A DNA stretch of 64,000 nucleotides from Ascoidea asiatica JCM 7603. Taxonomy: Eukaryota > Fungi > Ascomycota. The position numbers and the translations under genes were made by a program. Positions 18,852 to 42,616 of the stretch are shown one piece after another (position 1 is the stretch's first letter; each line of letters starts with the position of its first letter). Where the stretch lies: the NCBI GenBank assembly GCA_001600695.1, contig BCKQ01000003.1:1890392-1954391 (forward strand). The letters are read 5' to 3'. The notes under the pieces were generated by a model that was not told the origin of the DNA, did no database searches, and saw only the letters and a program-made list of their open reading frames with translations.

Positions 18852-20015
18852 CTAAATTTTATTTGGTTTGATTCTTTTATCTGCTATAAAATCATCATAA
18901 TAATCATCATCTTTAGGTACATCTTTCTCTAAACCTCTTTTATTATTAATATTTGAGTAAATTTTATTTGAATGATCTAACAGTATATTTTTTTCTTCAC
19001 TGTTTATTTCTATTTGATTTTCTTTATCGTCTAGAGATGCAATACTATTTTCTTTATCTATTTTACTATTATTTTGATATTCATAATTATCATTATTGCT
19101 ACTGTTAACTTCATCTTTATTTTTATCCTTATTTTTACTTTTATCGTTCAAAATATGAAAATATTGAATTTGATCTCCTTCAATTTTTTTAATTTTATTC
19201 ACAATATTATGAACTGTTTTAATTTTTAAACCTTTTGCATCTTTACTTAATTTATTAAAATATTTATCATTTTCGATTAATTTATTTAATGTTTCTCTAA
19301 TATTTATTGGTGAAAATCCTTTCAATGCTTCTTTTTCAACTAATTCTTTTAAAAATGGTGAAATTTTATAATTATCACTATCTTTAATCAAATGATTATG
19401 TCCTCCTTTACTTTGACTTAATTTATATTCATTTGGTGTTTCAGTAATTACTAATTTAGCTGGACAATGAAAATTCAAATATTTATTTTTTTGGTCTTTA
19501 TTTTCTCTTTGTTTTATTTTCTTTTGATTATTATTATTATTATTCTTTTTATCATCAATATTTTTATTATTTTTATTGTTTTTATCAGTTTTATTATCTT
19601 TAATTGAATCATATCTTTTACCAGCCAATCTACATTCATATCTTAACTTTCTAATATTTCTTTTATTGAATGGTTTTTTACCACCACTTTGAAATCTATA
19701 AATATTACTAATTGATGTCATTATTTGAAATCCGAATTCATTTTTTGGAATAACTAATATTTTTTCATTATATTTTTTGTTATTAATTGAATCTTCTAAT
19801 GAACATTCTATTGTATTTTCTAATAAATTTTTAATAATAATTTTAGTTCCATCGATATCTTTTACAATTGAATTAACATTTTCTGTTTGTTTTTCTATTT
19901 CTTCAATTTCTATCTCATTTTGTCTATTTATATTACTATTCAATTCAAATATTTCATTTCTGTATTCAATCAATCTCTCTAATTGAAAATTATTGTCAGA
20001 TAAATCAAATTCCAT
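18852..20015 (-). CDS. Mutator(MULE)-derived WRKY/GCM1 (FAR1-like) zinc-finger DNA-binding protein, no DDE domain
   Basis: RYECRL...HCPAKLVIT...GGHNH (C..C..HxH) followed by KELVEKEALKGFSPINIRETL helical segment typical of fungal MULE N-termini; remainder low-complexity. Confidence 0.7.
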   Translation of the reverse strand: MEFDLSDNNFQLERLIEYRNEIFELNSNINRQNEIEIEEIEKQTENVNSIVKDIDGTKIIIKNLLENTIECSLEDSINNKKYNEKILVIPKNEFGFQIMTSISNIYRFQSGGKKPFNKRNIRKLRYECRLAGKRYDSIKDNKTDKNNKNNKNIDDKKNNNNNNQKKIKQRENKDQKNKYLNFHCPAKLVITETPNEYKLSQSKGGHNHLIKDSDNYKISPFLKELVEKEALKGFSPINIRETLNKLIENDKYFNKLSKDAKGLKIKTVHNIVNKIKKIEGDQIQYFHILNDKSKNKDKNKDEVNSSNNDNYEYQNNSKIDKENSIASLDDKENQIEINSEEKNILLDHSNKIYSNINNKRGLEKDVPKDDDYYDDFIADKRIKPNKI

Positions 20016-30361: not shown

Positions 30362-33300
30362 ATGTCTTCTTTGCAAGATCTACCTCCAAATATTGACACA
30401 ACAATGGCAACCATTGATGCTGCAAATCCAATTTCCTCATCCAATGATGTTGATACAAACGCTGCCTTGATTCATGATACTTTGGTTGCTGCTAATGCTC
30501 AATTTTCGGAGGCTCAAAACTCTCAAAGAATCGAGAAGCATTCTAAATCTTCATCTTCAAAAAGTTTAAAAAGAGATTATAACTGGAAAAATTTTGTTTT
30601 GTTTGATCGAGAAAATATTAACAATTTGGATCTAAACTGTTCAAAAATAACTCCAAATACAGTTCAGAAAGTTAGATGTGTTTTCTGTGATCAACAAATG
30701 AATTATAAGTCTAGAAATGGTCCTGGCGCAATAACTGATCATCTCGAGCATCATCATCGTGATAATTTAATAGCTCTTAAAAATTCTTCTTTAACTGGAA
30801 ATGATTCAATAACTCCAACTTCAAGATTAGCTCTCGAAGTTTCAAATTCATCTCTTCAAAATGATTCTTTAGAAATTTCAAGAGAACATTTATTACTTCA
30901 AAATTCAATGATGGCACCTCAAGGGTCTCCAGCAGCTGAAGCTCTTGCTCTTTCTCTTTCTGGGAATATGTCTAGGAAACGAGATAGGAGTTATATTTCG
31001 GATGGAATGGATATGGATAACAATAATGATGGTAGAAGTAGCAATGATAATGATGATGTTAATCTCAATGCGAATACACATTTACCTCCTCCTAAAAGAC
31101 AATATAACTGGAAACACTATGTTGAATTTATGAATATGGATTCTGATGAAAAAATCACACCAAATACTGTCCAAAATGTTAAATGTATATTTTGTTCACA
31201 AATGATGAAATATAAATCTCGTAATGGACCAGGAACAATCATTGATCATCTTGAAAATAAACATTTTAGTCAATTAAAGGAATCAAATACAGATAATCCC
31301 ATAACTTTCAAATCAACTTTAGGCCCCAGGAGAATTCGTAGAAGGTCTGTTAACCAATTTGCAAATGATTCACAACTTTTATCTGCTAATAGTACTTCTC
31401 CTAATATTAATATTGATACTGAAAATTCTTTACATAATGACAATCTTAAAAGCGAACCCCCTTATAGAATTGCAAAAATGGATATTGGGAATTTCTCAGT
31501 GTCAAACAGAAATGACAATTTCAATAATGATCCTTTTAAAAATTACATTAAAAGATTATACAATTGGAAAGATTTTGTGGTTAACATATCTTCTAATCCC
31601 TCAACTTCAATCAACGTTGCTCAAAAATTACGGTGTTTATTTTGTGGCCATGTAATGAAATATAAATCAAGAAATGGTCCTGTAACTATAACTGATCATT
31701 TAGAAAATAATCATGGCTCCAAAATTGATTCTTTAATGTCAAATAAGAATATTCGTGTTTCAAGAACTGTTCCTTCAAATTTATTAAATATGGTGTTAGA
31801 AAATGATTTGAGTCTTGATTTTATTGAAAGTTCAGCCTTTGAAGCTTTAATATATCGTTGGTTTCCTATTAAAGTGAATTCTCAAATTCTTGAGTATAAA
31901 CTATCATTATTATATGCAAAAGCCATCAACACCATTGTCGAAACATTCTCACTAGCAATGGGTGTTTCAATTGGATTTGGAATTCATAAATCGAAAACTT
32001 CTTATTCAATGTTAACAGTTGTTGCTTTCGGATTAATTGAAAACTTGGAAACTAATTTGCTTGAAAGAAAAAAAGAAATTTTGAAAATCAAATTAATTGA
32101 ACCAGATCTGTCTTCAAAAGAAATTGCAGAAACAATTTTCATGATTATAAATGAATTCAATATCACTGACAAAATTACAGCATTTGTTGTACCAGATACT
32201 CCTTTCAATCAGGAAGTCTCAGAATATTTTTATCAAATTTTAACTCAAAATAGCAATCTTGCTATTATTGACAGTTCTTCAAGTATTTGTTGTCTTTTTG
32301 ATATATTAAATTCCTTAGGTGAAATTACGATGAGCTCATTTTTGGGTCAAGAAAAAGTTGAAAGTGATATTAACAGTTGTGATCAAAAATTAAAGACAAT
32401 TTTTGGGAAAATTCAAAAATTTCAAGAATTAATCAATTTATCTCCTAAAAGAAAGAAAGAATTCAAAATATTAATGAATAATCATGAATATGGAAAGGAC
32501 GATTGTTCAAAAGTTGACTCTTTCAGCTATGAAAGCGTGGAACTGGAGAACGAAGAATTTGATTTAATTAGTCGATTCCAAAAATGGAAAAGAATTTACT
32601 TTCTTTTAAATACATTTGTTGCTAATCATGAATGTATTAACCAATGTCTTGATATTTTCAAAGATAATTATAATATTTTTGTTGAAAAATTTTCCATTGA
32701 AGAGATTGAAGCTATTAAAGATATTTTAATGATAGCTGAGCCTGTTTATTTTAATATTATAAAAGTAATTGAAGAAAAAATTAATATATCTGATTATATT
32801 TCAACATTGACATCACTCAAAGCAATTTTTTTTCAAATGAAAAACGGTAATGAAGATATTAGTGAAGAAGGAATGGAAATGAATTATTTCAAGAAAATTT
32901 TAATTGAAAAAATATTAAATAAACTAGAAACTATAATCAATAAAAGTACTAGTAACAATATTTTAAATTCATGTTATATCCTAAGTACTAGTAATGATAT
33001 TGGAATTTTAAGAGATACAAATAGATCTAGTTTTAATGATGCTTTCAATTATATCAAAAAAATTTCTAAGAATTATGATGAAATATCTAGAATTACAATG
33101 GGTGATTATGGTGATAAAGATCTTTTAATAAACAATTATAATAAATCTAGTGAACATAATGATGATGATAATAGTAATAGTAATGATAATAATAACCTTA
33201 TTGAAAAAAATGAAATGAATAAGGGAAAAAATATAAATCAAATAGATAATCAACAAAGAAATGAAGGTGAAAACATAAATGAAGAAGAAAATAATGAATT

Positions 33301-34675
33301 AAATCAGATAAATAATAGAAATCATGAAAATGGAGACAATAATGAAATTAGCTCTAATATAGGAAGTAATTCAAACAAACAAAAGAAAAACAAAAGGAGA
33401 AAATTGATAAATTATGATTATAATGGAAATATTATTGAAGATAATAGTTATCATACCATTAGTGGAGGATCAATTGATGAAGAATTGAATAGTTTTATTA
33501 CTTATGAAATGGCAAATAATAATGAAGTTTTAATTAGATGGTCATTGATTAGAGGAAAATATCCAAAATTATATGAAATTATTAAAGGATTATTTTCTAT
33601 TAAAAGTGATTTTACAATTGAAGTTGGTGAAGTTTTAAATGAAAGTTTTAAAAAATTGAAAGAAATCAAAGAATATATGAAAAATGAGAAAAATAAAAAG
33701 AATAATATAAATAATGGTAAAAATGAAAATATTGAAATTGATGGAATTGATGTGAATTTAAATATGAATTTAAATACAAATGAAGAAATTGATGAAGATG
33801 AAAAAGTTGAAAAATTAATTAATGAATTTATAATTTGTAAGAAATATTTGGAGAAAAAAGAAGAAATTCTGAAAAATAAACATCCAAATAAAAATAAAAA
33901 TAAAGTTAAAAATAGAAATAAAAATATTAATATCAATAATAGTAATATTAATAATAATGGTAATAATAATGGAAATAATAGTACTTTTGATAACAATATG
34001 GGAGTAGATATGGATATGAATTTGAATATGAATGAAATGAATATGAATATGAGCATGAATGGAATGAACCTACCAGGAAATATGAATATGGGAAATGGTA
34101 AAAGTGGAAATAATCAAAAAACTAGCAATAATAACAATACCAATGGTAACAACAGTAATAACAGTAGTAATACTAATTCCAATAATATTAATAATAATAA
34201 TTCGTTAAATAATCTTTTTAATAATTCCGAATCAGTATTATTATTGCAAGAATTTTCTCAAGGGATAAATAATAGATTAGGTAATAATGAAGAGAATAAT
34301 AATAGTGATAATAGTAATGGAACTAAAATTAATAATGAAAATGAAGAAGATGTTAATATAAATGATCATAACAAAAACGAGAATGATAATTCTAATGCGA
34401 ATGAAGAAGTAAATGCTATTGATAGTAATATTGACCCATCTATCAGTAATAATGGTAATAATAAAGCAGATAATATTAGTTATCATGGTGATCATGATGA
34501 TAAGAAAATAAATAGGACTAGAGAAGAAAATAAAAAAGAAATTGAAAATTTGAATAATATTGTCAAGAACAATGGTAATAATAACAATAATAATGGTGGT
34601 AATAGTAACAACAATAATGGAAATACTCAAGATTTTTATCAAAATTTAGAAAATCTATCACAATACTTAAGATGA
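30362..34675 (+). CDS. Domesticated hAT-transposase-derived protein with three BED zinc fingers, degenerate RNase-H core and hATC-like domain
   Basis: Three repeats KRxYNWKxxV...CxFC..MxYKSRNGPxxIxDHLExxH; hAT-like segments FIESSAFEALI, EFNITDKITAFVVPD, CLFDILN, KWKRIYFLL, AEPVY, IDEELNSF, WSLIRGKYPKLYEIIKGLFSI. ATG at 30362 (track start 30326 is TTG). No TIR/TSD seen. Confidence 0.8.
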   Translation: MSSLQDLPPNIDTTMATIDAANPISSSNDVDTNAALIHDTLVAANAQFSEAQNSQRIEKHSKSSSSKSLKRDYNWKNFVLFDRENINNLDLNCSKITPNTVQKVRCVFCDQQMNYKSRNGPGAITDHLEHHHRDNLIALKNSSLTGNDSITPTSRLALEVSNSSLQNDSLEISREHLLLQNSMMAPQGSPAAEALALSLSGNMSRKRDRSYISDGMDMDNNNDGRSSNDNDDVNLNANTHLPPPKRQYNWKHYVEFMNMDSDEKITPNTVQNVKCIFCSQMMKYKSRNGPGTIIDHLENKHFSQLKESNTDNPITFKSTLGPRRIRRRSVNQFANDSQLLSANSTSPNINIDTENSLHNDNLKSEPPYRIAKMDIGNFSVSNRNDNFNNDPFKNYIKRLYNWKDFVVNISSNPSTSINVAQKLRCLFCGHVMKYKSRNGPVTITDHLENNHGSKIDSLMSNKNIRVSRTVPSNLLNMVLENDLSLDFIESSAFEALIYRWFPIKVNSQILEYKLSLLYAKAINTIVETFSLAMGVSIGFGIHKSKTSYSMLTVVAFGLIENLETNLLERKKEILKIKLIEPDLSSKEIAETIFMIINEFNITDKITAFVVPDTPFNQEVSEYFYQILTQNSNLAIIDSSSSICCLFDILNSLGEITMSSFLGQEKVESDINSCDQKLKTIFGKIQKFQELINLSPKRKKEFKILMNNHEYGKDDCSKVDSFSYESVELENEEFDLISRFQKWKRIYFLLNTFVANHECINQCLDIFKDNYNIFVEKFSIEEIEAIKDILMIAEPVYFNIIKVIEEKINISDYISTLTSLKAIFFQMKNGNEDISEEGMEMNYFKKILIEKILNKLETIINKSTSNNILNSCYILSTSNDIGILRDTNRSSFNDAFNYIKKISKNYDEISRITMGDYGDKDLLINNYNKSSEHNDDDNSNSNDNNNLIEKNEMNKGKNINQIDNQQRNEGENINEEENNELNQINNRNHENGDNNEISSNIGSNSNKQKKNKRRKLINYDYNGNIIEDNSYHTISGGSIDEELNSFITYEMANNNEVLIRWSLIRGKYPKLYEIIKGLFSIKSDFTIEVGEVLNESFKKLKEIKEYMKNEKNKKNNINNGKNENIEIDGIDVNLNMNLNTNEEIDEDEKVEKLINEFIICKKYLEKKEEILKNKHPNKNKNKVKNRNKNININNSNINNNGNNNGNNSTFDNNMGVDMDMNLNMNEMNMNMSMNGMNLPGNMNMGNGKSGNNQKTSNNNNTNGNNSNNSSNTNSNNINNNNSLNNLFNNSESVLLLQEFSQGINNRLGNNEENNNSDNSNGTKINNENEEDVNINDHNKNENDNSNANEEVNAIDSNIDPSISNNGNNKADNISYHGDHDDKKINRTREENKKEIENLNNIVKNNGNNNNNNGGNSNNNNGNTQDFYQNLENLSQYLR

Positions 34676-35925: not shown

Positions 35926-35997
35926 TTATCAATATTATCAATATTATCAATATTATCAATATTATCAATATTATCAATATTATCAATATTATCAATA
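35926..35997. repeat. Tandem repeat (TTATCAATA)x8
   Basis: Eight exact 9-bp units about 120-190 bp upstream of the LRR gene ATG. Confidence 0.9.
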
Positions 35998-36114
35998 TTA
36001 TTATTCCAAAATATTCAAAGAATATTAACTTATGTTTTTTTTTTTCCAGTTTAATCTTTTTTTTATTATAAACTCATTAACAATATAATATAATATAATT
36101 TAACTTAATATAAT

Positions 36115-41170: not shown

Positions 41171-42616
41171 ATGTCCTTTAATATAAGTTGGGATTCATTT
41201 GAACAAGAATCTTTAATGTCTTGGTGTAAACAAATATTACATGATGCTTTAAATCAATCTAATAAAAGGCCTGATATATTGGCGTCAAATATTGTAATTC
41301 AAGATTTAAATTTTGGTAAAATCTCTCCATCCTTTGAAATCTTGGAAATTGGAGATTTAGCTGATGATAGATTTAGAGGTATATTTAAAGTAAATTATAA
41401 TGGCGATGCTCATATTACTTTATTCACAAATATCCAAGCAAATCCTATTAATATATATTGGAAAAACTCTGTGAATGATATTTTACAAAATAATAATGAA
41501 TTTACTAATGTTTTACCAAATTTATCATCAATTTCACAAAATTTAGCAATACCTGTTAACTTGAAATTATCCAAAATTAAAATTTCCGGAATAATAGTTA
41601 CTGTTTTTAATAAATCAAAAGGTTTAACATTAGTATTCAAAAATGATCCATTAGAAAATATTGAAGTAAGTTCAACTTTTGATACAATTCCTGCAATAAG
41701 AAATTTTTTACAAAAACAAATCGAAAATAAAATCAGAGAATTGTTTAGAGAAGTATTACCTGGTGTACTTTATCAATATTCTCAAAAATGGGTTGCAAAT
41801 GGTCTTCATTCACATTTAGTATTTCTGAAAACTTCCAAATCTTTGAAAAGTAAACATACTGGATCTGAAGATGAAATTGAAGATGATGAAAATTCTCTTA
41901 AATCTAAAGAAATATCTTTATCTGATATTAATCCTGATGGTCCTGATTTATCTCCAGCAAATATGTTAAGATTATCAACTTTATCTTCTTCCAGGCAGAC
42001 TCTATCCTTGGATGTTGTTAAAATAGAAGATTTTGTTCAAAGATCGTCTTTGGAATTTACTAATACTTATAATCAAAAAACAGAACATTTAAATATAAAT
42101 TCATCTAACCTTCCATTTTCAACTGAAAATTATAATCCAAATGAAATAAATAAATATCTTGATAATATATCTCGATTTCAATTGAATAATTATAATAAGG
42201 GTCATGCCAATATTCAACCAAGGCGAAGAGTAATACATTTAGGAAAGAAAAAGAAATTAAAGAGCTCAAAATCTTCTTCTAAATTGAAAGTATCTGTAGA
42301 AAAAGAATCAGTGACTAAAGAGAAAAAACCAATCAAATCACAATCTTCTTCAATTGTTAAAACTGACAATCATATATCATCTGATTCTAAGAAATCAAAA
42401 TTATCCAATCAATTATTAAGCATTAATGAATCTTTAGATCCTGCTCCTAGTTATGAAATTGCTGTTCAATCCAAACAACCTCAATTAAAATCTCTCTATT
42501 CAACACAATCATTAATGACTTCATTACCACCTTCTAATACCTTTAAATTTCCCTTGAGGCCTCCTTTATATAGCTATCCATCTGTTTGTTCATTTTCATT
42601 CCATAATATCAAATGA
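41171..42616 (+). CDS. MDM34: ERMES subunit Mdm34 (SMP domain)
   Basis: MSFNISW, LNFGKISPSFEILEIGDL..DRFRGIFK, KGLTLVFKNDPLE..VSSTFD, LSSSRQTLSL. Confidence 0.95.
   Translation: MSFNISWDSFEQESLMSWCKQILHDALNQSNKRPDILASNIVIQDLNFGKISPSFEILEIGDLADDRFRGIFKVNYNGDAHITLFTNIQANPINIYWKNSVNDILQNNNEFTNVLPNLSSISQNLAIPVNLKLSKIKISGIIVTVFNKSKGLTLVFKNDPLENIEVSSTFDTIPAIRNFLQKQIENKIRELFREVLPGVLYQYSQKWVANGLHSHLVFLKTSKSLKSKHTGSEDEIEDDENSLKSKEISLSDINPDGPDLSPANMLRLSTLSSSRQTLSLDVVKIEDFVQRSSLEFTNTYNQKTEHLNINSSNLPFSTENYNPNEINKYLDNISRFQLNNYNKGHANIQPRRRVIHLGKKKKLKSSKSSSKLKVSVEKESVTKEKKPIKSQSSSIVKTDNHISSDSKKSKLSNQLLSINESLDPAPSYEIAVQSKQPQLKSLYSTQSLMTSLPPSNTFKFPLRPPLYSYPSVCSFSFHNIK

Follow-up and report, generated by a model that had tools for sequence, protein, structure and literature searches.

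The window analyzed here is a 64,000-nucleotide stretch of contig BCKQ01000003.1 of the budding yeast Ascoidea asiatica JCM 7603, in which lies a gene whose product combines three BED fingers with a full-length but degenerate body derived from a hAT transposase. The gene, referred to below as the triple-BED gene, consists of one complete open reading frame (ORF) of 1437 amino acids (aa) plus stop. An original prediction, made from the letters of this stretch alone, had proposed an intact ORF of this length, and this was confirmed from ATG to stop, with the remaining two forward frames carrying 106 and 306 stops across 30362-34675. The local G+C content is 26%, a composition that predicts one stop per ~10 codons, and the probability of encountering no stop is ~1e-64 over the whole 1437-codon ORF and ~1e-20 over its body (aa 455-925) taken separately. 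The features of the gene, and the evidence on which each was assigned, are as follows.

30362-34675, forward strand: complete ORF of the single-copy gene, 1437 aa and stop (ATG at 30362, stop at 34675).
30578-30766, forward strand: BED finger 1 (aa 73-135), CCHH core at 30677-30757 (Pfam zf-BED, alignment of the fingers, match of a hAT-only profile to aa 98-151).
31103-31273, forward strand: BED finger 2 (aa 248-304), the best Pfam stretch, CCHH core at 31184-31264 (Pfam, finger alignment, hAT-only profile).
31559-31723, forward strand: BED finger 3 (aa 400-454), CCHH core at 31634-31714 (Pfam, finger alignment, BLASTP, hAT-only profile).
31763-31951, forward strand: hAT N-terminal helical region preceding the RNase H core (aa 468-530, LLNMVLENDLSLDFIESSAFEALI...), 30% identical to the hAT transposases P0004 and P0005 (BLASTP; AlphaFold2 (AF2) predicted local distance difference test (pLDDT) score 75-88).
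31952-32311, forward strand: RNase H-like core, strands 1-4 and helices (aa 531-650) (phmmer, hAT-only profile at 47.6 bits, AF2 pLDDT 70-91, VIA-align, ESM Atlas).
32312-33136, forward strand: predicted all-alpha middle region (aa 651-925) at the position of the hAT insertion domain (AF2, all helices, pLDDT 67-82 in patches only; MAFFT).
33137-33418, forward strand: Asn-rich low-complexity insertion (aa 926-1019), 32% Asn (composition; AF2 pLDDT <35).
33473-33646, forward strand: probable vestige of the hATC dimerisation region (aa 1038-1095) (MAFFT, shuffle test, hAT profile, hhalign and ESM features, all weak and colinear).
33677-34672, forward strand: Asn/Met/Lys-rich low-complexity C-terminal tail (aa 1106-1437).

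Constraint on the BED array

The Pfam zf-BED model scored 23.3 bits against a cut-off of 20.6 and aligned to three stretches of the protein, in agreement with the three BED fingers that had been predicted. All three retain a CCHH core with the spacing C-x2-C-x17-H-x4-H, have pairwise identities of 49-61% and conform to the common pattern YNWK..C.FC..M.YKSRNGP..I.DHLE..H, with a KR.YNWK prefix. The linkers that follow the fingers show no mutual similarity, which identifies the finger alone as the unit of repetition. Finger 3 occupies the place of the transposase's own finger, immediately N-terminal of the hAT body, and since the profile built from real hATs also matches fingers 1 and 2, all three are of the transposase's own BED type.

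Pairwise comparison of the finger-coding segments (n = 3) gave proportions of synonymous differences (pS) of 0.68-0.85, which is saturated, proportions of nonsynonymous differences (pN) of 0.23-0.29 and a dN/dS of ~0.15, a ratio that covers the finger-to-finger comparison within the gene. The combination of saturated pS with low pN and low dN/dS indicates that the finger duplications are old and without recent gene conversion, and that purifying selection has acted on each finger.

Ancestry of the body

When aa 60-930 were compared by phmmer with 1.84 billion (1.84e9) representative proteins at E <= 1e-3, six matches were obtained in total (P0001-P0006). Two of them, P0004 and P0005, are bona fide hAT transposases, each with the Pfam families Dimer_Tnp_hAT (PF05699) and hAT-like_RNase-H (PF14372), and these matched aa 422-653 and 472-628 at E values of 5e-6 and 6e-6, the second match lying entirely outside the BED fingers. 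Pairwise BLASTP against the same two proteins returned 1e-12 and 3e-10. Identity to any hAT found was at most 24% by pairwise BLASTP, and the helical region together with the RNase H core is 23-30% identical to real hATs.

A profile was also built from 26 hATs, namely 24 open frames picked from 80 metagenome hAT loci together with P0004 and P0005, with the triple-BED protein excluded. This hAT-only profile gave 47.6 bits on aa 416-650 (single-sequence E 5e-17), while 2000 shuffled versions of the body reached 8.2 bits at most. The core is thus significantly similar to genuine hAT transposases by both phmmer and profile, and the body belongs to the hAT superfamily by descent, as had been proposed for the degenerate region that follows the fingers. 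A sequence search of the PDB with the protein returned nothing relevant, neither aa 60-1000 nor the BED region gave any match in word-based searches, and a profile search of the databases recovered only the four triple-BED proteins already found. In the middle region (aa 651-925) no sequence similarity to hATs was recognisable and hhalign gave no match.

Structural model of the core

An initial AF2 run with 3 sequences, with a pLDDT of 39, was superseded by a run with 27 sequences that included metagenome hAT ORFs, for which the mean pLDDT was 54 and model residues 10-180 (aa 464-634) reached 70-91. The order of elements in aa 464-634 of this model is strand-strand-strand-helix-strand-helix. 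In the comparison with Hermes that had been suggested as a check, Foldseek against the PDB placed Hermes transposase in all of its top 11 matches (probability 0.95-1.00), with a low global template modelling (TM) score that results from domains badly placed in the AF2 model. VIA-align over 48,161 chains scored retroviral integrase cores at Z 8.8 (83 residues, root-mean-square deviation (rmsd) 2.6) and aligned Hermes over 216 residues at Z 8.2, with Argonaute PIWI, RuvC and Prp8 RH domains at lower ranks.

The ESM Atlas shape search returned hAT or ZBED1 RNase-like clusters in 10 of 10 rows, the best local match being ZBED1_RNase-like (TM 0.68, rmsd 2.9, 174 residues), and a search by ESM language-model features with aa 440-930, from which the fingers are excluded, independently gave ZBED1_RNase-like, at 0.93. 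The matches of the AF2 model, whose input alignment consisted of hATs, support an RNase H-like fold of the catalytic core, and the absence of such a fold, which would have spoken against the original prediction, was not what was found.

Loss of catalytic residues

The motifs of the transposase were located as follows, and BLASTP and the hAT-only profile agreed on the motif assignments.

TxDxWTS, present as VSIGFGIHKS: first Asp replaced by G540 and Trp by H542 (BLASTP, hAT-only profile).
tDNAs, present as VVPDT: second Asp replaced by P611, with D612 one position on (BLASTP, hAT-only profile).
CxxH, present as C644-L-F-D647: His lost, D647 in its place (BLASTP, hAT-only profile).
TRWNS, present as QKWKR: Trp aligned with W742 (MAFFT).
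SESAFS, present as KSDFT: a 7-residue deletion in the segment bearing the third acidic residue (MAFFT).

Most of the readings made from the letters held in these alignments. SIGFGIHKS was correctly taken for the first Asp region, with D replaced by G540 and W by H542; CLFD stands for CxxH (C644 to D647), QKWKR stands for TRWNS with its Trp at W742, and the SERxFS motif is lost, with KSDFT and its 7-residue deletion in its place. The second Asp, thought to be possibly kept in VVPDTPFN, is a mixed case, as the aligned position is P611 and an Asp, D612, is adjacent to it. An intact DDE triad with CxxH, as carried by active hATs, was therefore not found in the protein. Since these positions are replaced, the protein is very unlikely to cleave DNA, and the substitutions at the first and second Asp, at the His of CxxH and in the SESAFS segment agree with the predicted catalytically dead state.

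Absence of transposon hallmarks and decay of other hATs in the genome

The inverted-repeat search around the gene yielded AT-rich low-complexity pairs only, and the gene is present in one copy in the 20.3-Mb, 71-contig assembly. Thus, neither the terminal inverted repeats (TIRs) and target site duplications whose absence had been predicted, nor the several copies with TIRs and an 8-bp target duplication that mark an active hAT transposon, were encountered, and a TIR-flanked multicopy family with an intact DDE was looked for and not found.

Three decayed hAT relics with Pfam Dimer_Tnp_hAT were identified elsewhere in the genome, at C13:386226-386375, C4:1501624-1501800 and C26:48241-48447 (L017-L019). 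Each is interrupted by a stop inside a match of ~50-70 codons, and in L017 a portion of the RNase H region survives as well, at an identity of 28-29% with P0004 and P0005. The relics resemble P0004 and P0005 and have no similarity to the 1437-aa protein. Their sequences show that ordinary hAT elements, without relation to the triple-BED gene, were formerly present in the A. asiatica genome. Because the relics carry stops, an unselected ancient hAT ORF decays in this genome, and the triple-BED ORF has not.

The presence of these hATC-positive relics, which document that the genome has hosted hATs, could be taken to favor an autonomous or recently immobilised hAT transposon with overlooked ends at the locus. 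This explanation is effectively refuted, however, by the replaced catalytic positions, by the lack of TIRs and the single copy, by the absence of similarity to the genome's own relics, by an identity of no more than 24% to any hAT found, and by internal finger duplicates that are saturated at synonymous sites. The core of the original prediction, an immobile, catalytically dead, hAT-derived gene with a triple-BED, ZBED-like architecture, agreed with the hAT homology, the modeled fold, the loss of the DDE residues, the lack of TIRs and the single copy.

A domesticated host gene is expected to be immobile and to hold an intact, long-lived ORF under purifying selection, and this is what the gene presents, given the P of ~1e-64 for its ORF, the dN/dS of ~0.15 between its fingers and the decay of the relics. 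We consider it likely that the triple-BED gene is a host gene derived from a hAT transposon, in which the finger was triplicated and the dead body was retained as a scaffold, and whose product would act as a DNA-binding regulator.

The C-terminal third

The segment at aa 1038-1095 is probably a vestige of hATC rather than an established dimerisation domain. It keeps EEL..F, the W of LIRW and YPKL, and its SESAFS segment is shortened and replaced by KSDFT. In a shuffle test, 2 of 3000 shuffles reached the score of the alignment to P0005 (p ~7e-4) and 109 of 3000 that of the alignment to P0004 (p ~0.04). The hAT profile gave 3.9 bits on this region, and hhalign over aa 651-1110 had its sole match there (E 0.29). 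The ESM-feature neighbours of aa 1015-1110 that bear a Pfam family were all Dimer_Tnp_hAT clusters, at 0.90, and Pfam on the hATC region itself was blank. The profile check suggested with the original prediction therefore came out in two parts, with zf-BED exceeding its cut-off (23.3 bits) and Dimer_Tnp_hAT returning nothing.

The Asn-rich insertion that precedes this segment terminates in a basic patch, KKNKRRK (aa 1008-1014). The tail that follows the hATC segment was described as Asn/Met-rich from the letters, and its composition is in accord with this (35% Asn over aa 1110-1437). Two antisense ORFs, 33502-34056 (reverse strand, 184 aa) and 34277-34642 (reverse strand, 121 aa), lie inside the DNA of the Asn-rich tail and are taken for artefacts, that is, for by-products of a low-complexity A-rich coding strand.

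Truncated relatives

The remaining four phmmer matches (P0001, P0002, P0003 and P0006; 392-772 aa) have three BED fingers each, with the same SRNGP/HLE signature, and no transposase body. Saccharomycopsis crataegensis is the source of P0002 (hypothetical protein DASC09_012380), in whose database entry CTG is translated as Ser, in keeping with the CUG-Ser2 clade (Ascoideales) (PMC11342251). In a CUG test of the A. asiatica genome, CTG codons were too few to assign it to this clade. The triple-BED array is colinear between these relatives and the 1437-aa protein (tblastn E 2e-16), and the signature Y.SRNGP..(I/L)..HLE..H is common to both. After finger 3, ~60 aa of the hAT helical region are kept in three of the four, and a search downstream of their genes gave no remnants of the body. 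The genes of three of the four adjoin a gene of the alcohol dehydrogenase (ADH) family; at L002, L003 and L108, in three species, the truncated triple-BED gene and a zinc-type alcohol dehydrogenase gene are arranged head-to-head, with ~2 kb past the truncated gene devoid of any ORF of at least 60 aa, a conserved micro-synteny that is missing from the A. asiatica genome.

The existence of these Saccharomycopsis hypothetical proteins in the databases means that the triple-BED gene is not the sole multi-BED form in yeasts. The statement made with the original prediction, that no multi-BED form is known to have been described in yeasts, held as regards the literature, in which no paper describing the Saccharomycopsis triple-BED proteins was found.

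A tree of 15 fingers placed the three of the 1437-aa protein in a clade of their own (ultrafast bootstrap (UFboot) 100, Shimodaira-Hasegawa-like approximate likelihood ratio test (SH-aLRT) 99), with the others grouped by position, a topology that could reflect either independent triplication or ancient homogenisation. Synteny with the Saccharomycopsis locus (ALG7/ADH/MRS2) revealed nothing in common. The A. asiatica ALG7 and MRS2 are 57% and 50% identical to those of S. crataegensis, values that, together with close homologues of the triple-BED protein only in Saccharomycopsis, suggest a placement of this budding yeast in or near the Ascoideales. As no BED gene lies beside either of them in the A. 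asiatica genome, positional orthology with the Saccharomycopsis genes is not shown. Neither one-to-one orthology of the fingers nor a common locus with P0001-3 and P0006 was thus obtained from the tree and the synteny comparison.

Two further Asn-rich ORFs of the A. asiatica genome touch on this group. The first (L015:4374-6461; C3 ~1,046,173-1,048,260, forward strand) encodes 695 aa with a BED finger at 18.9 bits, below the Pfam cut-off, and a hAT helical remnant, and has no RNase H body. The tails of the Saccharomycopsis triple-BED proteins are nearer to this remnant than to the 1437-aa protein (35-49% identity, E 2e-14 to 2e-13). The second (L014:4207-6198, reverse strand; C1 ~2,292,706-2,294,697) encodes 663 aa, has one BED finger that scores below the threshold (19.2 bits) and is not similar to the 1437-aa protein.

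The shape of the truncated relatives lends itself to an explanation in which the triple-BED array alone is functional, the body and tail being baggage that is in the process of being lost, as has already happened in Saccharomycopsis. All four relatives stop soon after finger 3 or after a helical remnant of ~60 aa, with no body remnant downstream; the hATC of the A. asiatica protein is degenerate and its body is broken by Asn-rich insertions; and S. cerevisiae RSF1 provides a published precedent of a truncated, domesticated hAT with the N-terminal part only (PMC2675101). However, ~650 body codons (aa 455-1110) have stayed open in DNA of 21-25% G+C, where a stop is expected per ~10 codons (P ~1e-30), the hATs left elsewhere in the genome are decayed, and the helical region and RNase H core have kept their similarity to real hATs. 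Due to these observations, the loss of function of the body is considered unlikely.

On the likely reading, that of a domesticated gene with a retained body, a broader scheme can be drawn, which we regard as doubtful. In it, hAT domestication would have followed a series particular to the Ascoideales, with the A. asiatica gene as the full-length stage that survives; this series would lead from the full-length dead triple-finger form to the truncated Saccharomycopsis triple-finger form and to the single-finger L015. In two lineages independently, the three-finger array would have arisen or been homogenised, so that a count of exactly three would have been selected for, and together the proteins would form a heteromeric chromatin complex of the Vid22/Env11 kind.

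Comparison with known systems

Animals (ZBED) and plants (SLEEPER) provide well-documented cases of hATs domesticated as BED-finger regulators, and multi-BED domesticated hATs occur in animals, e.g., ZBED4 and ZBED6. Vid22 and Env11 of yeast carry a single BED finger each. To our knowledge, hAT/BED domestication in yeasts has been known only through single-finger or truncated examples (Vid22/Env11, RSF1, Kat1).

The A. asiatica protein resembles animal ZBED1, ZBED4 and ZBED6 in having N-terminal BED fingers, an RNase H-like body of hAT origin and, at the C-terminus, a hATC region, here as a putative vestige, and in being encoded by an immobile single-copy host gene; the ESM-feature and Atlas neighbours of its body are ZBED1_RNase-like clusters. 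It differs from them in that no direct ZBED sequence match was obtained by phmmer and the Pfam ZBED1/hAT models stayed below threshold, and in its far more degenerate hATC, large Asn-rich insertions and long tail. The gene would also represent an independent domestication in a budding-yeast lineage. With transposases of the Hermes/Ac type, it shares the BED-type N-terminal finger, the helical region and the predicted topology of the RNase H-like core, Hermes providing the best PDB matches, whereas its DDE and CxxH residues are substituted, it has no TIRs or target-site duplications, and it is single-copy.

Amongst yeasts, hAT domestication recurs in the Saccharomycotina, as RSF1 and Kat1 exemplify. 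Kat1 has kept its nuclease activity, whereas the A. asiatica protein is predicted to be inactive, and RSF1 is a truncated N-terminal fragment, in contrast to the full-length multi-BED protein described here. S. cerevisiae RSF1 is a domesticated hAT of which the N-terminal part was kept and in which no BED motif was found (PMC2675101; PMC4316626), and the hAT families described from yeasts also include Kat1/Roamer and Rover (PMC4316626). No multi-BED form is among the yeast systems described in PMC8682794, PMC4316626 and PMC2675101.

Vid22 is a BED and RNase H-like protein found in a complex with Env11 and Tbf1 (PMC8682794), and an origin from an ancestral hAT has been suggested for YGR071C (ENV11) and its homologues (PMC4316626; PMC2675101). 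As yeast nuclear proteins with BED and RNase H-like parts that are thought to derive from an ancient hAT, Vid22 and Env11 most likely provide the closest functional analogy, that of binding to chromatin or to DNA structures in a multiprotein complex. The A. asiatica protein could even be an orthologue of S. cerevisiae Vid22/Env11, stemming from the same ancient domestication, in which case its lineage would have acquired two BED fingers. The plan of the proteins is indeed the same, with a BED finger, an RNase H-like body, basic patches of nuclear type and a large size, and the published domain assignment and complex of Vid22 (PMC8682794) as well as the suggested ancestry of ENV11 (PMC4316626) would be compatible with it. 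The single BED finger of each of these proteins against three in the A. asiatica protein, and the absence of sequence similarity by phmmer, set them apart. None of the six phmmer matches (aa 60-930 against 1.84e9 proteins, E <= 1e-3) was Vid22/Env11-like and two word-based searches were blank, in a comparison that included no profile-profile step, so that simple orthology, named at the outset as a finding that would overturn the prediction, is not supported; a remote relationship by way of hAT ancestry may exist. The flanking genes of the triple-BED gene, which encode a GH3 glucosidase, SEC23 and a leucine-rich repeat (LRR) protein, are also not known as neighbours of VID22/ENV11. Orthology to Vid22/Env11 is therefore regarded as quite improbable.

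Proposed role of the triple-BED protein

The evolutionary path that best fits these results begins with a hAT DNA transposon, from which the host gene descends. The transposase's own BED finger underwent an ancient triplication, after which purifying selection has preserved each copy. The body persists at full length, with its N-terminal helical region, RNase H-like core, alpha-helical middle and probably vestigial hATC, while replacement of the metal-binding catalytic positions would have led to the loss of DNA cutting.

At present, the three BED fingers may read DNA sites multivalently or as composite sites, and the dead body with its hATC vestige could be a scaffold through which the protein associates with itself or with partners, comparable to Hermes oligomers and the Vid22-Env11-Tbf1 complex. 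Basic patches such as that at aa 1008-1014 may serve nuclear import, and the Asn-rich tail may be a disordered interaction region. Altogether, the protein would be a chromatin-bound regulator or architectural factor, like animal ZBED and yeast Vid22/Env11. The designation as a DNA-binding regulator follows, by analogy, from BED homology, and dimerisation or other oligomerisation would depend on a very degenerate hATC vestige.

Several observations weigh against this proposal. The Pfam hAT and ZBED1 models matched neither the body nor the whole protein nor its sub-pieces, and the evidence for hATC is weak. The AF2 model is confident for only ~170-260 of 656 residues (about a third), and since its input alignment consisted of hATs, it is biased towards the hAT fold, a bias from which the sequence statistics of phmmer and the hAT-only profile are free. 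There is a small chance that D612, beside the second catalytic position, reflects an alignment slip. Additionally, no full-length orthologue was found by phmmer among the 1.84e9 representatives, and as the Saccharomycopsis relatives do without the body, it may be dispensable.

Domesticated hAT and ZBED-like genes are already known, and this one is distinctive by its occurrence in a yeast, its three fingers and the series from full-length to truncated forms. A multi-BED, full-length but dead hAT form thus exists in budding yeasts too. The truncated relatives offer a natural comparison of domestication stages, with the body kept or lost, in genetically tractable organisms, and such a comparison could help to test what the dead body contributes, by oligomerisation or partner binding, to BED-finger proteins generally.

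Other observations in the window

No tRNA genes were found within the window. Two of its ORFs, 18852-20015 (reverse strand, 387 aa) and 41171-42616 (forward strand, 481 aa), matched no Pfam family at E <= 1e-5, and the 481-aa ORFs at 41171 and 51373 have the same length and are mutually unrelated. A tandem array of the TTATCAATA type at 35926-36049, just upstream of the 1225-aa LRR gene, appeared as inverted-repeat arms.

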